From: Dendrobates tinctorius
Taxonomy: Eukaryota
Assembly: GCF_039654945.1 (NCBI RefSeq)
Contig: NW_027361788.1
Location: 44,640,001-44,704,000, forward strand
Length of the DNA stretch: 64,000 nucleotides
Reading direction: 5' to 3'
Shown here: positions 6,901 to 12,900 of the stretch, one piece after another
Numbering within the stretch: position 1 is the first letter of the stretch
Layout: each line of letters begins with the position of its first letter
The notes under the pieces: model-generated
Database searches by the model: none
Seen by the model: the letters and a program-made list of their open reading frames with translations, nothing else
What the model was told of the DNA's origin: nothing
Program-made: the position numbers and the translations under genes

Positions 6901-9900
6901 CTCCTCCATGCAGATCTTCTCCAAGTTATCTAGGTTCTTTGGGTGTCTCATGTGGACTTTAATCTTGAGCTCCTTCCACAAGTTTTCAATTGGGTTAAGG
7001 TCAGGAGACTGACTAGGCCACTCCAACACCTTGATTTTTTGCCTCTTGAACCAGGCCTTGGTTTTCTTGGCTGTGTGCTTTGGGTCGTTGTCTTGTTGGA
7101 AGATGAAATGACGACCCATCTTAAGATCCTTGATGGAGGAGCGGAGGTTCTTGGCCAAAATCTCCAGGTAGGCCGTGCTATCCATCTTCCCATGGATGCG
7201 GACCAGATGGCCAGGCCCCTTGGCTGAGAAACAGCCCCACAGCATGATGCTGCCACCACCATGCTTAACTGTAGGGATGGTATTCTTGGGGTCGTATGCA
7301 GTGCCATCCAGTCTCCAACCGTCACGTGTGTGGTTGGCACCAAAGATCTCGATCTTGGTCTCATCAGACCAGAGAACCTTGAACCAGTCTGTCTCAGAGT
7401 CCTCCAAGTGATCATGAGCAAACTGTAGACGAGCCTTGACATGACGCTTTGAAAGTAAAGGTACCTTACGGGCTCGTCTGGAACGGAGACCATTGCGGTG
7501 GAGTACGTTACTTATGGTATTGACTGAAACCAATGTCCCCACTGCCATGAGATCTTCCCGGAGCTCCTTCCTTGTTGTCCTTGGGTTAGCCTTGACTCTT
7601 CGGACAAGCCTGGCCTCGGCACGGGAGGAAACTTTCAAAGGCGGTCCAGGCCGTGGAAGGCTAACAGTAGTTCCATAAGCCTTCCACTTCCAGATGATGC
7701 TCCCAACAGTGGAGACAGGTAGGCCCAACTCCTTGGAAAGGGTTTTGTACCCCTTGCCAGCCTTGTGACCCGCCACGACCTTGTCTCTGATGGCCTTGGA
7801 ATGCTCCTTTGTCTTTCCCATGTTGACCATGTATGAGTGCTGTTCACAAGTTTGGGGAGGGTCTTAAACAGTCAGAAAAGGCTGGAAAAAGAGATAATTA
7901 ATCCAACCATGTGAAGCTCATTGTTCTTTGTGCCTGAAATACTTCTTAATACTTTAGGGGAACCAAACAGAATTCTGGTGGTTTGAGGGGTTGAATAATA
8001 AATGACCCTCTGAATAAACTTTTCACAATTTAAAAAAAAATTAAACAAAGAAATAACATTCTTTTTTGCTGCAGTGCATTTCACACTTCCAGGCTGATCT
8101 ACAGTCCAAATGTCACAATGCCAAGTTAATTCCGAATGTGTAAACCTGCTAAATCTGCAGGGGGTTGAATACTACTTGTAGGCACTGTATAACCCAATAG
8201 GATCACTAATGACAAAACCAGACAGGAAGAAGAGAGTCTCAGTGGTGCAGTCTGCCCATTACTGGCGGCCGTTCAACACATCGGACCCATATTCATTATT
8301 GCGTCCGCTCCTGTTTTTTGTCCCGTTTTCATGTCTTTTTTTTCTTCAGCCCTATATTGCTCCTTTCCGTTTCGCCTACTCTGAAGTCTATTCTATACTT
8401 GCTCGTCTGGGTGCGGGTTACGTAATCCAGATGTTTGAGGCCGATTCATTATGGGAGAAAAAGGTTTTCGAAATTTTGTTTTTCCATTTTTTTCCCCACA
8501 AATGTTCTCCAGTTTCCTCCCTGGAGGGATGTTTTTCTTCAACAGAAATTTTTGTGACAATGATAAAAGCCGCATGTGACATTTTAAGAGGATCATGTGA
8601 CTTTTTGCTCTAAAATAAAAAATATATGAATTCTGATAAAAATCCTAAAGTTTTATGTATGCAGCTCCTGTGCAGATAAATGTGTCTCCATCCTTCCAAC
8701 CCCGTACAGTCTGACCACGCAGTCCCGGTCTCCAGTAATTGATAACCAACAGACGAGGACAACTGTAGGAACAGACTACCCAGGGTTTGTCATTAGTCTG
8801 TAACCATGGCAACACATAGCACTGGACAAGAGTTGTAGACACAAAACGTTGGGCGGTTTCTCAGATGGACCATTTGCAAAACTGTTTTGTGGTTTAAATG
8901 CATAGAGCTGGGATCCCGCAGTGCGGTAGTCATACACAACCAGCAGGCGAGAACGGATGTTACCACAGAGGCGTTACCTGAAAACCTGCGCCATTAATCG
9001 TCCTGCAGGTAGCTTACTGAGGGGGCTGCAATGGAGCTCCTGCCACCGCCAGCTTCCTGCAGCAGGGACTCTGCCTCCTGGGACCCCACTCCACCCCAGT
9101 CACCACCACCAGTAACCTACATTCCGATCCCTATTTCCCTCAAAATTTGAGGGGGAAAAAGTGCATCTTATAATCTAAAGATACAGTGTATTGAATATAT
9201 AAAATTAAAAAAATGATGCCAGTAACCACTAGGTGGAGCTCATTGCTATAGAATTATACTATTGTTCCAAACCTTTTGGGGCTGTATAATTCTGTGTGCA
9301 GTGAGCTCCCCTAGTGGTGGCTGTATACATAAACACCTAAACACTGAAACTATAGCCAAGTATCGTTTCTCCTTGCGGAGATTGACATGCTAAGCATGCC
9401 AAGATGAGGAAAGCCGCAATGCTCCTCTGCGAAATATGCAAATTGTCTCTTCAGAGAGGAAGAGGACTAGAACTACCGTATTTTTCGGACTATAAGACGC
9501 ACCGGACCATAAGACGCACCCCAATTTTCAGTAGGAAAATAGGGGAAAAAAAAAAGTGTCAAATGGGGGTCCGTCTTACAGTCCGAATTCAGCTTACCTG
9601 GGAAGGGATCCGGCACAGGTGGAGAAGTAGTCACAGGGGTCATTCAGTGGTCCAGGCTCGTGCGGTGGCGGCTCTGTGCTGGGGCAGGTTGGTTGTGCTG
9701 GGGCAGCTGCGCTGGGGCAGCTGTGCTCTGCGGTGGTGGCAGCTGTGCTGGGGCTGGGGCAGCTGTGCTGGGGCTGGGGCAGCTGTGCTGGGGCAGCTGT
9801 GCTCTGCGGTGGTGGCAGCGGGTGGCGCTCTGCGGTGCAGTGGTGGCAGCGGGCTGTGCTCCGATGCAGGGGCCGCGGCTACGCCGGCATTTCTTCGCAG

Positions 9901-12900
9901 CCCGGAGGCCCCCGCAGTTCCCTTGCTGGCCGCCGCCATGTTGCGGTGGCCTCCGGGAGCATGGACGCCGGAAAGATGGCCGCCGGTCCGGGGACGGCGT
10001 ATGCGCGGGATCAGATCTCGTCCCGAGATCTCGGGGGACGAGATTCAAATCTCGGCAACGAGATCTCATCCCCCGAGATCTCGGGACGAGATCTGAAGCT
10101 GCGCATGCCCCGGACCGGCGGCCATCTTCCCGGCGTCCATGCTCCCGGAGGCCACTGCAACATGGCAGCGGCCAGCAAGGGAACTGCGGGAACCTCCGGG
10201 CTGCGAAGAAATGCCGGCGGAGCCGTGGCCCCTGCACCGGAGCACAGCCCGCTGCCACCAACGCACCGGAGAGCGCCGCCCGCTGCCACCAGGTTAGACT
10301 GTGTATTGCGACCATAAGACGCACCCCCCACTTTCCCCCAAAATTTTTGGGGAAAAAAAGTGCGTCTTATGGTCGGAAAAATACGGTAACTCTAGTGCCA
10401 CCTACTGGAAGTAGCAATCCTAAAAGTCAATGTTGACCCTTTAATGAGCCTTGTTACATGACTTAGGATAAAAGCCAAGCCAGAATCTCAATTTGCAGAC
10501 ACTGTGTTTCGGGCTACTGACCCTCGTCAGTGAAAAGTGTGAGATCTGGTTTGGCTGTGTGAGACGCGTCAACACTGAAACTGCAACACCATGGAGGAAA
10601 AGTCGTGGAGTGACGGAAATCACAGGGCGGGGACGTGTTACTAATCTGCAGATTATAAAGTGAGAACTCCATGCTGAATAATTGAAGATCTTTTGAAAAC
10701 ATGTATAAAGCGCAAGGTGCAAAAATCCCAGCACTTACTGTCTCAGCTGCCATCGCTGAGATTATTAAAGGGAACCTGTCAGTCCCCTCTGCCCTCCAAT
10801 CCAGCAGCACTCAGCTATCTGCAATTAAACTCCCTCCCTCCCCAGCCCTGTATAAAGTAATTCAGTTAAATGCTTTAACCCCTTCACCCCCAAGGGTGGT
10901 TTGCACGTTCATGACCGGGCCAATTTTTACAATTCTGACCACTGTCCCATTATGAGGTCATAACTCTGGAACTCTTCCATGGATCCTGGCGACATATTGT
11001 ACTTCATGATAGTGGTAAAATTTCATTCAAATAACTTGTGTTTATTTGTGAAAAAAAACTGGAAATTTGGCGAAAATTTTGCAATTTTCCAACTTTGAAT
11101 TTTTATGCCCTTAAATCACAGAGATATGGTGCACAAAAATCTTGATAAGTAACATTTCTCACGTTTACTTTACATCAGCACAATTTTGGAACCAAAATTT
11201 TTTTTTTGTTAGGAAGTTATAAGGGTTAAAAGTTGACCAGCGATTTCTCATTTTTGCAACACCATTTTATTTTTACGGACCACATCACATTTGAAGCCAC
11301 TTTGAGGGGTCTATATGATAGAAAATACCCAAAAGTGACACCATTCTAAAAACTGCACCCCTTAAGGTGCTCAAAACCACATTCAAGAAGTTTATTAACC
11401 CTTTAGGTGCGTCACAGGAATTTTTTGAATATTTAAAAAAATGAACTAACTTTTTTTTCACAAAAAAAATACTTCAGGTTCAATTTTTTTTATTTTACCA
11501 AGGGTAACAGGAGAAATTGGACTGCAAAAGGTATTGTGCAATTTGTCTTGAGTACGCTGATACCTGATATGTGGGGGGGAACCACTGTTTGGGCGCATGA
11601 CAGAGCTCAGAAGGGAAGGAGCGCCGTTTGACTTTTTCAATGCAAAATTGGCTGGAATTCAGATCGGACACCATGTCACGTTTGGAGAGCCCCTGATGTA
11701 CCTAAACAGTGGAAACCCCCCACAAATGACCCCATTTTGGAAACTAGACCCCCCAAGGAACTTATCTAGATGTGTGGTGAGCACTTTGAACCCCCAAGGG
11801 CTTCACAGAAGTTTATAATGCCCGGGCATGAAAATAAAAAAAATCGTATTTTTTCCACAAACATGATCAATTAGTCCCCAATTTTTTCATTTTCCCAAGG
11901 GTAACAGGAGAAATTGGACCCCAAAAGTTGATGTCCAATTTGTCATGAGTACGCTGATACCTCATATGTGGGAGAAAACTACTGTATGGGCACACGTCGG
12001 GGCTCGGAAGGGAAGTAGTGACGTTTTGGAATGCAGACTTTGATGGAATGGTCTGCGGGTGTCATGTGCGTTTGGAGAGCCCCTGATGTACCTAAACTAT
12101 TGAAACTCCCCACAAGTGTCCCCATTTTGGACACTAGACCCCCACGGAACTTATCTAGATGTGTGGTGAACACTTTGATCCCCCAAGTGCTTCACAGAAG
12201 TTTATAACGCCCGAGCTTGAAAATAAAAAAATCATTTTTTTCCACAAAAATGATATTTTTGCCCCCAATTTTTTATTTTCCTAAGGGTAACAGGAGAAAT
12301 TGGACCCCAAAAGTTGTTTTGCAATTTGTCCTGAGTAGGCTGATACCCTACATGTGGGGGTAAAACACTGTTTGGGCGCATGGCAGAGCTTGGAAGGGAA
12401 GGAGTACCATTTGACTTTTTCAACTCAGAATTGGCTGGAATTGAGATCAGACGCCATGTTGCATTGGGAGAGCCCCTGATGTGCCCAAACAGTGGAAACC
12501 CCCCAATTCTAACTCCAACCCGAACCCCAACACACCCCTAACCCTAATCTCAGCCCTAACCCTATCCCTAATGGGAAAATGGAAATAAATACATTTTCTT
12601 TTAATTTTATTATTTTTCCCTAACTAAGGGGGTGATAACGGGGGGTTTGATTTACTATTTATGGCAGTTTTTATGTTTGGCAGCTGTCACACGCTGAAAG
12701 ACGCTTTTTATTGTAAAAATAGTTTTTGCATCACCACATATTGAGAGCTATAATTTTTCCGTATTTTGACCCACCGAGTCATGTGAGGTCTTATTTTTTG
12801 CGGGACGAGTTGACGTTTTTATTGGTACTATTTTCGGGCACGTGACATCTTTTGATCGCTTTTTATTTTGATTTCTGGGATGCAGAATGAACAAAAACCA

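Follow-up and report, generated by a model that had tools for sequence, protein, structure and literature searches.

The 64,000 nucleotides of Dendrobates tinctorius DNA analysed here (contig NW_027361788.1, positions 44,640,001 to 44,704,000; referred to as the window, in whose numbering all positions are given) raise the question of what kind of element carries a hammerhead ribozyme motif into the first intron of NDUFB11, and whether that motif has any consequence for the host gene. A first-pass annotation, made from the sequence alone, had proposed a dispersed frog retrozyme copy masked by a miniature inverted-repeat transposable element (MITE) and possibly cutting the NDUFB11 pre-mRNA. The present analysis indicates that the unit concerned, which measures 302 nt once the nested transposon is removed, is very probably a single, nearly full-length, decayed monomer from a non-coding hammerhead repeat that is present in high copy number and belongs to the metazoan class of non-long terminal repeat (non-LTR) retrozymes.

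The motif consists of a type I hammerhead with an extended stem I, read from the sequence on the minus strand from 10559 to 10474, of which the core and the proximal helices occupy 10492-10536; a descriptor scan, Rfam model RF00163, folding and the majority letters of the repeat family, all described below, bear on it. The core heptamer CUGACGA (10530-10524) precedes a 4-bp helix II, in which GGGU (10523-10520) pairs with GCCC (10514-10511) and CAGUA forms the loop, and this is followed by GAAA (10510-10507). Helix III comprises 3 bp (ACA with UGU) closed by a CAG triloop, the palindrome reading ACAC-A-GUGU (10507-10499). With U16.1 at 10499 and C17 at 10498, the self-cleavage site is predicted 3' of C17, between 10498 and 10497 on the minus strand, both from the motif (GUC, then U) and from the Rfam alignment. 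The proximal part of helix I spans six positions (10531-10536 with 10497-10492), five of which are paired and one of which is a U x C mismatch (10533/10495). Beyond an internal loop, the distal part continues with approximately 16 pairs out to 10555/10474, interrupted by one bulge and by an A x C mismatch (10550/10479). The conserved hammerhead core is complete (C3 U4 G5 A6 N7 G8 A9, G12 A13 A14, the pair A15.1-U16.1, and an H17 that is not G) and the topology is that of type I, helix I being open-ended and helices II and III being closed. This layout is the canonical one of metazoan type I hammerheads, in which helix I has 6 bp, helix II has 4 bp and helix III is short and palindromic (PMC4209133). 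The elements listed in the first-pass annotation, i.e. CUGACGA, GAAA and GUC with a cut at 10498/10497, a 4-bp stem II, a long stem I with an internal loop and a stem III of ACAC-A-GUGU, were thus all located.

That this arrangement would be a chance hammerhead look-alike within an unrelated short repeat, for instance a short interspersed nuclear element (SINE), is scarcely credible. Indeed, a descriptor requiring the core, a helix II of 4-6 bp, a helix III of 2-5 bp and at least five of six helix I pairs, applied to both strands, matched the 64-kb window once, at this very site, and matched none of 300 simulated 64-kb windows of matched dinucleotide make-up. Similarly, a local Rfam scan of 57 nt (10486-10542) aligned 10492-10536 on the minus strand to all 45 positions of Hammerhead_1 (RF00163; 21.2 bits, E 0.0017). 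This alignment gave identical helices, with the U x C mismatch as the sole non-standard pair flagged, and Hammerhead_1, rather than HH9 or HH10, was the best model within the Rfam hammerhead clan. In addition, the 93-nt hammerhead region folded with a minimum free energy (MFE) of -32 kcal/mol (z -3.75 versus shuffled sequences), distal stem I and helix II being retained in the MFE structure.

The borders of the unit are equally well defined. An exact 12-mer, AACACTGAAACT, flanks 9352-10570 on both sides as a target-site duplication (9340-9351 and 10571-10582), its left copy abutting the end of the family homology, where a tandem joint reaches 9358. Between these repeats lie two arms on the minus strand. 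The right arm (10392-10570), delimited by contig depth and alignment ends, contains the hammerhead and represents the 5' portion of the unit RNA; the left arm (9352-9474), delimited by contig depth and by a joint from 9470 to 10388, represents the 3' portion. Joined together, they form the 302-nt unit, with a GC content of 45.7% and a strongly structured RNA (-98.5 kcal/mol, z -4.6), in which the cut site falls after nt 73, so that the ends of the unit are 73 nt and 229 nt away from the cut. All open reading frames (ORFs) overlapping the unit run across its borders in a mechanical way, and the unit is non-coding. Neither a tRNA-like head within the unit nor an A-rich or poly(A) tail at the 3' end of its RNA was found in the sequence, and a SINE identity was rejected on these two grounds, which also argue against a chance motif in such a repeat. 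The proposal of a non-coding unit of approximately 302 nt bounded by a 12-bp duplication was therefore confirmed. A BLAST search with the transposon-free unit retrieved no second copy from the 64-kb window.

The two arms are separated by a non-autonomous, MITE-like DNA transposon of 913 bp (9475-10387), recognised by its inverted repeats and by contigs representing the empty site. Its inverted ends, which read ACCGTATTTTTC and GAAAAATACGGT, begin at the first base of the element, and long inverted repeats are also present internally (inverted repeats I1-I3). In the four sequencing runs described below, 75, 57, 59 and 18 contigs, respectively, pass straight from 9470 to 10388, skipping 917 bp with a 4-letter ambiguity. 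This indicates that other copies of the unit lack the 913-bp element and that AACT is the duplication caused by its insertion, the first AACT (9471-9474) being the last four letters of the left arm and the second (10388-10391) having been added by the transposon. The masking of the unit by a MITE was thereby verified, whereas the size of 915 bp given in the first-pass annotation has to be corrected to 913 bp (917 bp are removed in silico). A TA duplication of the Tc1/mariner type was considered for this element and rejected, the best-supported empty-site joint giving the four letters AACT. Whereas all four runs are rich in the ends of the MITE (about 9475-9640 and 10280-10387), its interior (about 9640-10280) is abundant in only two of them (X1 and X4, organisms A and B), being rare in the other two (X5 and X15, organisms C and G). 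The MITE is therefore a repeat independent of the unit, and this distribution suggests a lineage-specific internal segment on shared MITE termini.

To which family the unit belongs can be read from contigs of these four runs (X1, X4, X5 and X15, i.e. organisms A, B, C and G), placed on 9000-10900 at 80% likeness. Summed contig depth in the four runs amounted to 5x10^4 to 6x10^5 over the left arm, versus approximately 10 at 9192-9255, and to 3.5x10^5 to 7x10^5 over the right arm, versus 30-430 at 10600-10727. Most alignments of other copies stop between 10545 and 10570, the commonest end being 10563-10564. The contrast in depth between arms and flanks means that the unit is a very high-copy repeat with its borders where the 12-mers place them. 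Sampled words of the right arm were moreover found at shares of 0.59-0.71 in runs labelled as six different organisms, each run containing approximately 1-3 billion letters. One contig forms a head-to-tail joint, passing from 10567 to 9358 via 18 extra letters, which corresponds to a monomer of approximately 311 nt; the insert in the window hence amounts to about 0.97 of a family monomer (302 of ~311 nt). Other genomic copies, the absence of which had been named among the grounds for refuting the first-pass proposal, are thus plentiful in the contigs of four runs, with one contig showing a head-to-tail arrangement. In addition, a 359-nt contig of X1 is identical to the window over 10538-10896 and spans the junction between unit and flank, indicating that organism A possesses this very insertion and probably represents the species of the window. 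Neither the hammerhead pattern nor a conserved segment of the unit, each used for one metagenome scan, gave a match, as expected for a collection in which frog DNA is unlikely.

In the contigs of X15 that diverge at 10502, a variant hammerhead was observed, with CUGAGGA, the loop CAACA and a helix III reading ACAUGUGU, at a consensus agreement of only 0.65. Its variant letters affect N7, loop 2 and the palindrome, all of them sites where a hammerhead tolerates change; as a lead only, it may represent a sister subfamily. X15, marked 'RNA?' by guess, was not counted as evidence of expression, since in depth profile, the unit-to-MITE-interior ratio included, it resembles the DNA run X5.

The family also informs on the structure of the hammerhead. 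Of the majority differences listed, all four within 10474-10559 fall in stems (10533, 10479, 10520 and 10514); a further 130, spread over the compared stretch, lie beyond this listing. On the RNA strand, the majority letter at 10533 (U to G) turns the U x C mismatch of proximal stem I into a G-C pair, that at 10479 (C to U) turns the A x C mismatch of distal stem I into an A-U pair, and those at 10520 (U to G) and 10514 (G to C) together turn a U-G pair of helix II into a G-C pair, altered on both sides. The chance that such letter changes would all yield pairs is approximately (1/3)^3, i.e. ~1/27 or ~0.04, based on column frequencies only, which carry no linkage between the letters. The two mismatches differ in their distribution, the window's letter at 10479 being kept by approximately one third of the depth in organisms A and B and that at 10533 by only 1-3% of the family depth. 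The A x C mismatch at 10550/10479 is therefore a subfamily trait. With the four natural majority letters swapped into the 93-nt piece, the hammerhead-shaped fold improved to -34.6 kcal/mol, as compared with -21.9 kcal/mol before, and the MFE fold now included proximal stem I. Majority letters that better the stems again speak against a chance look-alike.

Taken together, the unit displays the features by which metazoan non-LTR retrozymes are recognised, namely tandem units of 150-450 bp, a GC content below 50% and duplications exceeding 4 bp (PMC7229834). It measures 302 nt, bears a type I hammerhead, has a GC content of 45.7%, contains no LTR, primer-binding site or polypurine tract, is flanked by a duplication of more than 4 bp, and belongs to a multicopy family with a head-to-tail arrangement. 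The same combination characterises the retrozymes of axolotl, mussel and coral (PMC7229834) and of Xenopus (bioRxiv 10.64898/2026.07.22.740005): a non-coding unit of approximately 300 nt with one type I hammerhead, a GC content below 50%, a very high copy number, occurrence both as arrays and as dispersed monomers, a duplication longer than 4 bp, the lack of an LTR, a primer-binding site and poly(A), and a weak palindromic helix III suggesting dimeric action. Compared with these published retrozymes, the present case concerns one decayed monomer from the assembly of another frog (GCA_039654945.1), the likeness being one of features and being known from DNA. Such elements were present in all seven amphibian genomes sampled, and in Xenopus the 57 retrozyme families have monomers distributed evenly over the chromosomes, 42-44% of the copies overlapping introns (44% in X. 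tropicalis; bioRxiv 10.64898/2026.07.22.740005). A further amphibian parallel, by description, is satellite 2 of newts and salamanders, whose unit of approximately 330 bp contains a type I hammerhead in which stem I is extended and helix III is short; satellite 2 forms long tandem arrays in caudates, whereas the copy described here belongs to a frog and is a single, dispersed insertion flanked by a duplication. The identification as a dispersed frog retrozyme copy, as proposed from the first inspection of the sequence, is accordingly supported by the high-copy family, the copies without MITE, the head-to-tail joint and the majority letters that restore the stems.

Type I hammerheads also occur on the pseudo-LTRs of Penelope-like elements, and the unit might alternatively derive from an autonomous element of that kind, either as an insertion heavily truncated at its 5' end or as a solo pseudo-LTR. 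Most of the hammerhead motifs of this type in genomes are solitary and probably represent truncated copies, of which there are thousands in X. tropicalis, with variable duplications (PMC4209133), and in Xenopus almost all retrozyme families have a pseudo-LTR as their sister (bioRxiv 10.64898/2026.07.22.740005); a variable-length duplication and the absence of a poly(A) tail are compatible with both origins. Such a fragment is nevertheless rather unlikely here. The insert corresponds almost exactly to one family monomer (302 of ~311 nt), the head-to-tail joint with 18 letters between units reflects a retrozyme arrangement rather than a 3-kb element, and no reverse transcriptase ORF was found nearby among the ORFs of the window. 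Furthermore, pseudo-LTR hammerheads are mostly of a minimal form, which combines a long helix II (6-8 bp) with a short helix I and lacks a real helix III, in contrast to the canonical hammerhead of this unit, with six positions in helix I, 4 bp in helix II and a real helix III of 3 bp.

Several observations weigh against the assignment to the retrozymes. The Rfam score of 21.2 bits lies below the curated gathering score of 34, which makes this a sub-threshold copy, although the gathering score is a database cut-off and not a structural feature. Rfam returned no hammerhead match for the whole 64-kb window at the gathering score, a result that would, together with the fact that only one copy is readable directly, favour a chance look-alike, nor did it return one for a 241-nt scan at E values up to 10. 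These two blanks are filter losses, and they were dropped as evidence against the motif after the 57-nt scan had given a match over the full model, so that the run of hammerhead models suggested in the first-pass annotation turned out positive, albeit below the gathering score. It follows that routine Rfam scans of windows under-count decayed retrozyme hammerheads, the present match being seen at 57 nt only. Secondly, in the MFE fold of this copy, a CACUG/CAGUG helix displaces proximal stem I and helix III. Thirdly, the run data are assembled contigs, which give no copy numbers, variant linkage, RNA ends or circles; the head-to-tail joint is listed in one run only (X5, which carries a different organism label, C), and none of the listed runs containing words of the unit is recorded as RNA.

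The position of the cut site within the insert bears on how a retrozyme copy of this kind may arise. An intact cut site 73 nt inside a 302-nt insert means that a cleaved linear monomer was not the template, and points to a circle or an uncleaved multimer; the first-pass annotation, which had noticed that the ends of the insert do not coincide with the cleavage site, had drawn the same conclusion. By analogy with the retrozymes of axolotl, Xenopus and invertebrates, tandem copies of the family would be transcribed, and their type I hammerheads, paired via the weak palindromic helix III, would cut the multimer into monomers of approximately 311 nt. Animal type I hammerheads are known to act as dimers in amphibians (PMC7229834, PMC4209133). 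A tRNA ligase may then circularise the monomers, and a Penelope-like reverse transcriptase and endonuclease may copy circles or multimers into new sites, with a duplication of more than 4 bp and without poly(A). In the present case, a template running across the cut site would account for ends that are 73 nt and 229 nt away from it, the copy presumably having inserted in sense orientation into NDUFB11 intron 1 with a 12-bp duplication. It would subsequently have decayed, the U x C mismatch arising in proximal stem I, while the distal A x C mismatch of this stem is shared with a subfamily. The 913-bp DNA transposon would have inserted into the unit later. In itself, this find carries little weight, as it is an ordinary example of a class documented in every amphibian genome sampled. 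It does offer a textbook case, with nested insertions marked by two clean duplications, an internal cut site, and majority letters that repair the stems.

As to the host gene, NDUFB11 is encoded on the minus strand, the stretch from its exon 1 to the exon with the ESSS domain extending over 3221-18266 according to ORF translations, Pfam and a public gene call. Exon 1 lies within an ORF at 17991-18266, with a mitochondrial-type leader at its start, the ESSS-domain exon lies within 3221-3391 (Pfam ESSS, E 1.6e-15), and the C-terminal exon is contained in 944-1117, all on the minus strand. In the public assembly GCA_039654945.1 (contig JAYMGB010000046.1), a 147-residue ESSS gene is likewise called on the minus strand, beside an LZTFL1-like ORF. 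The retrozyme unit is thus located within the NDUFB11 intron 1 of approximately 14.7 kb, and the exon ORFs and the Pfam ESSS match on the minus strand bear out the sense orientation of the hammerhead that had been claimed for it. The hammerhead would be transcribed ahead of the MITE and is uninterrupted by it.

This location invites the view that the hammerhead is an active or exapted intronic ribozyme, which would cut the NDUFB11 pre-mRNA co-transcriptionally and tune its output as amniote intronic hammerheads do. Its sense orientation in intron 1, its intact core and the fact that the MITE does not split it are in line with such a role, and conserved intronic type I hammerheads do exist in amniotes (PMC6155905). 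The structure of this copy argues otherwise: the U x C mismatch is situated three positions from the cut and is found in only 1-3% of the family depth, the hammerhead-shaped fold is 12.7 kcal/mol weaker than that of the majority type and loses to the competing helix, and helix III is weak. Moreover, retrozyme hammerheads of amphibians, or of vertebrates in general, cleave poorly as single motifs (PMC7229834), in vitro eight of nine Xenopus dimers remained uncleaved and one of nine was cleaved, and retrozymes are depleted from introns (bioRxiv 10.64898/2026.07.22.740005). The amniote hammerheads HH9 and HH10 (in RECK, CTCL and DTNB; PMC6155905) share with the present motif a type I hammerhead in sense orientation in an intron of a protein-coding gene; each of them is a single-copy motif whose conservation at orthologous sites extends over hundreds of millions of years, whereas the motif examined here is a decaying copy within a very high-copy repeat, and its best Rfam model is neither HH9 nor HH10. 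An active or exapted ribozyme is hence very unlikely at this site, and, as judged from the sequence, cleavage of the NDUFB11 pre-mRNA by this copy is unlikely, this copy most likely being an inert passenger of the pre-mRNA today. There is a very slim chance that the hammerhead still cleaves some of the nascent NDUFB11 pre-mRNA or has been kept at this site in related frogs; residual cleavage or retention of this kind would mark the beginnings of a domestication such as that undergone by the intronic hammerheads of amniotes.

Further repeats surround the unit and occur elsewhere in the window. Just to the left of the duplication, a separate repeat at 9256-9319 reaches a depth of 5x10^3 to 3.6x10^4, its sequence around 9301-9320 being inverted relative to 9226-9242. 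To the right, another separate repeat starts near 10856 (10856-10900), with a depth of approximately 7-9x10^4 in the three larger runs. At a greater distance, a run of 195 N occupies 29066-29260, and a long, nearly perfect palindromic element without sequence similarity to the retrozyme unit extends over 33352-34602. Finally, the same NDUFB11 intron contains an intact ORF of 343 amino acids on the minus strand (6799-7830), coding for a Tc1/mariner transposase of the Sleeping Beauty-like type with the Pfam domains HTH_Tnp_Tc3_2, HTH_SB and DDE_3.

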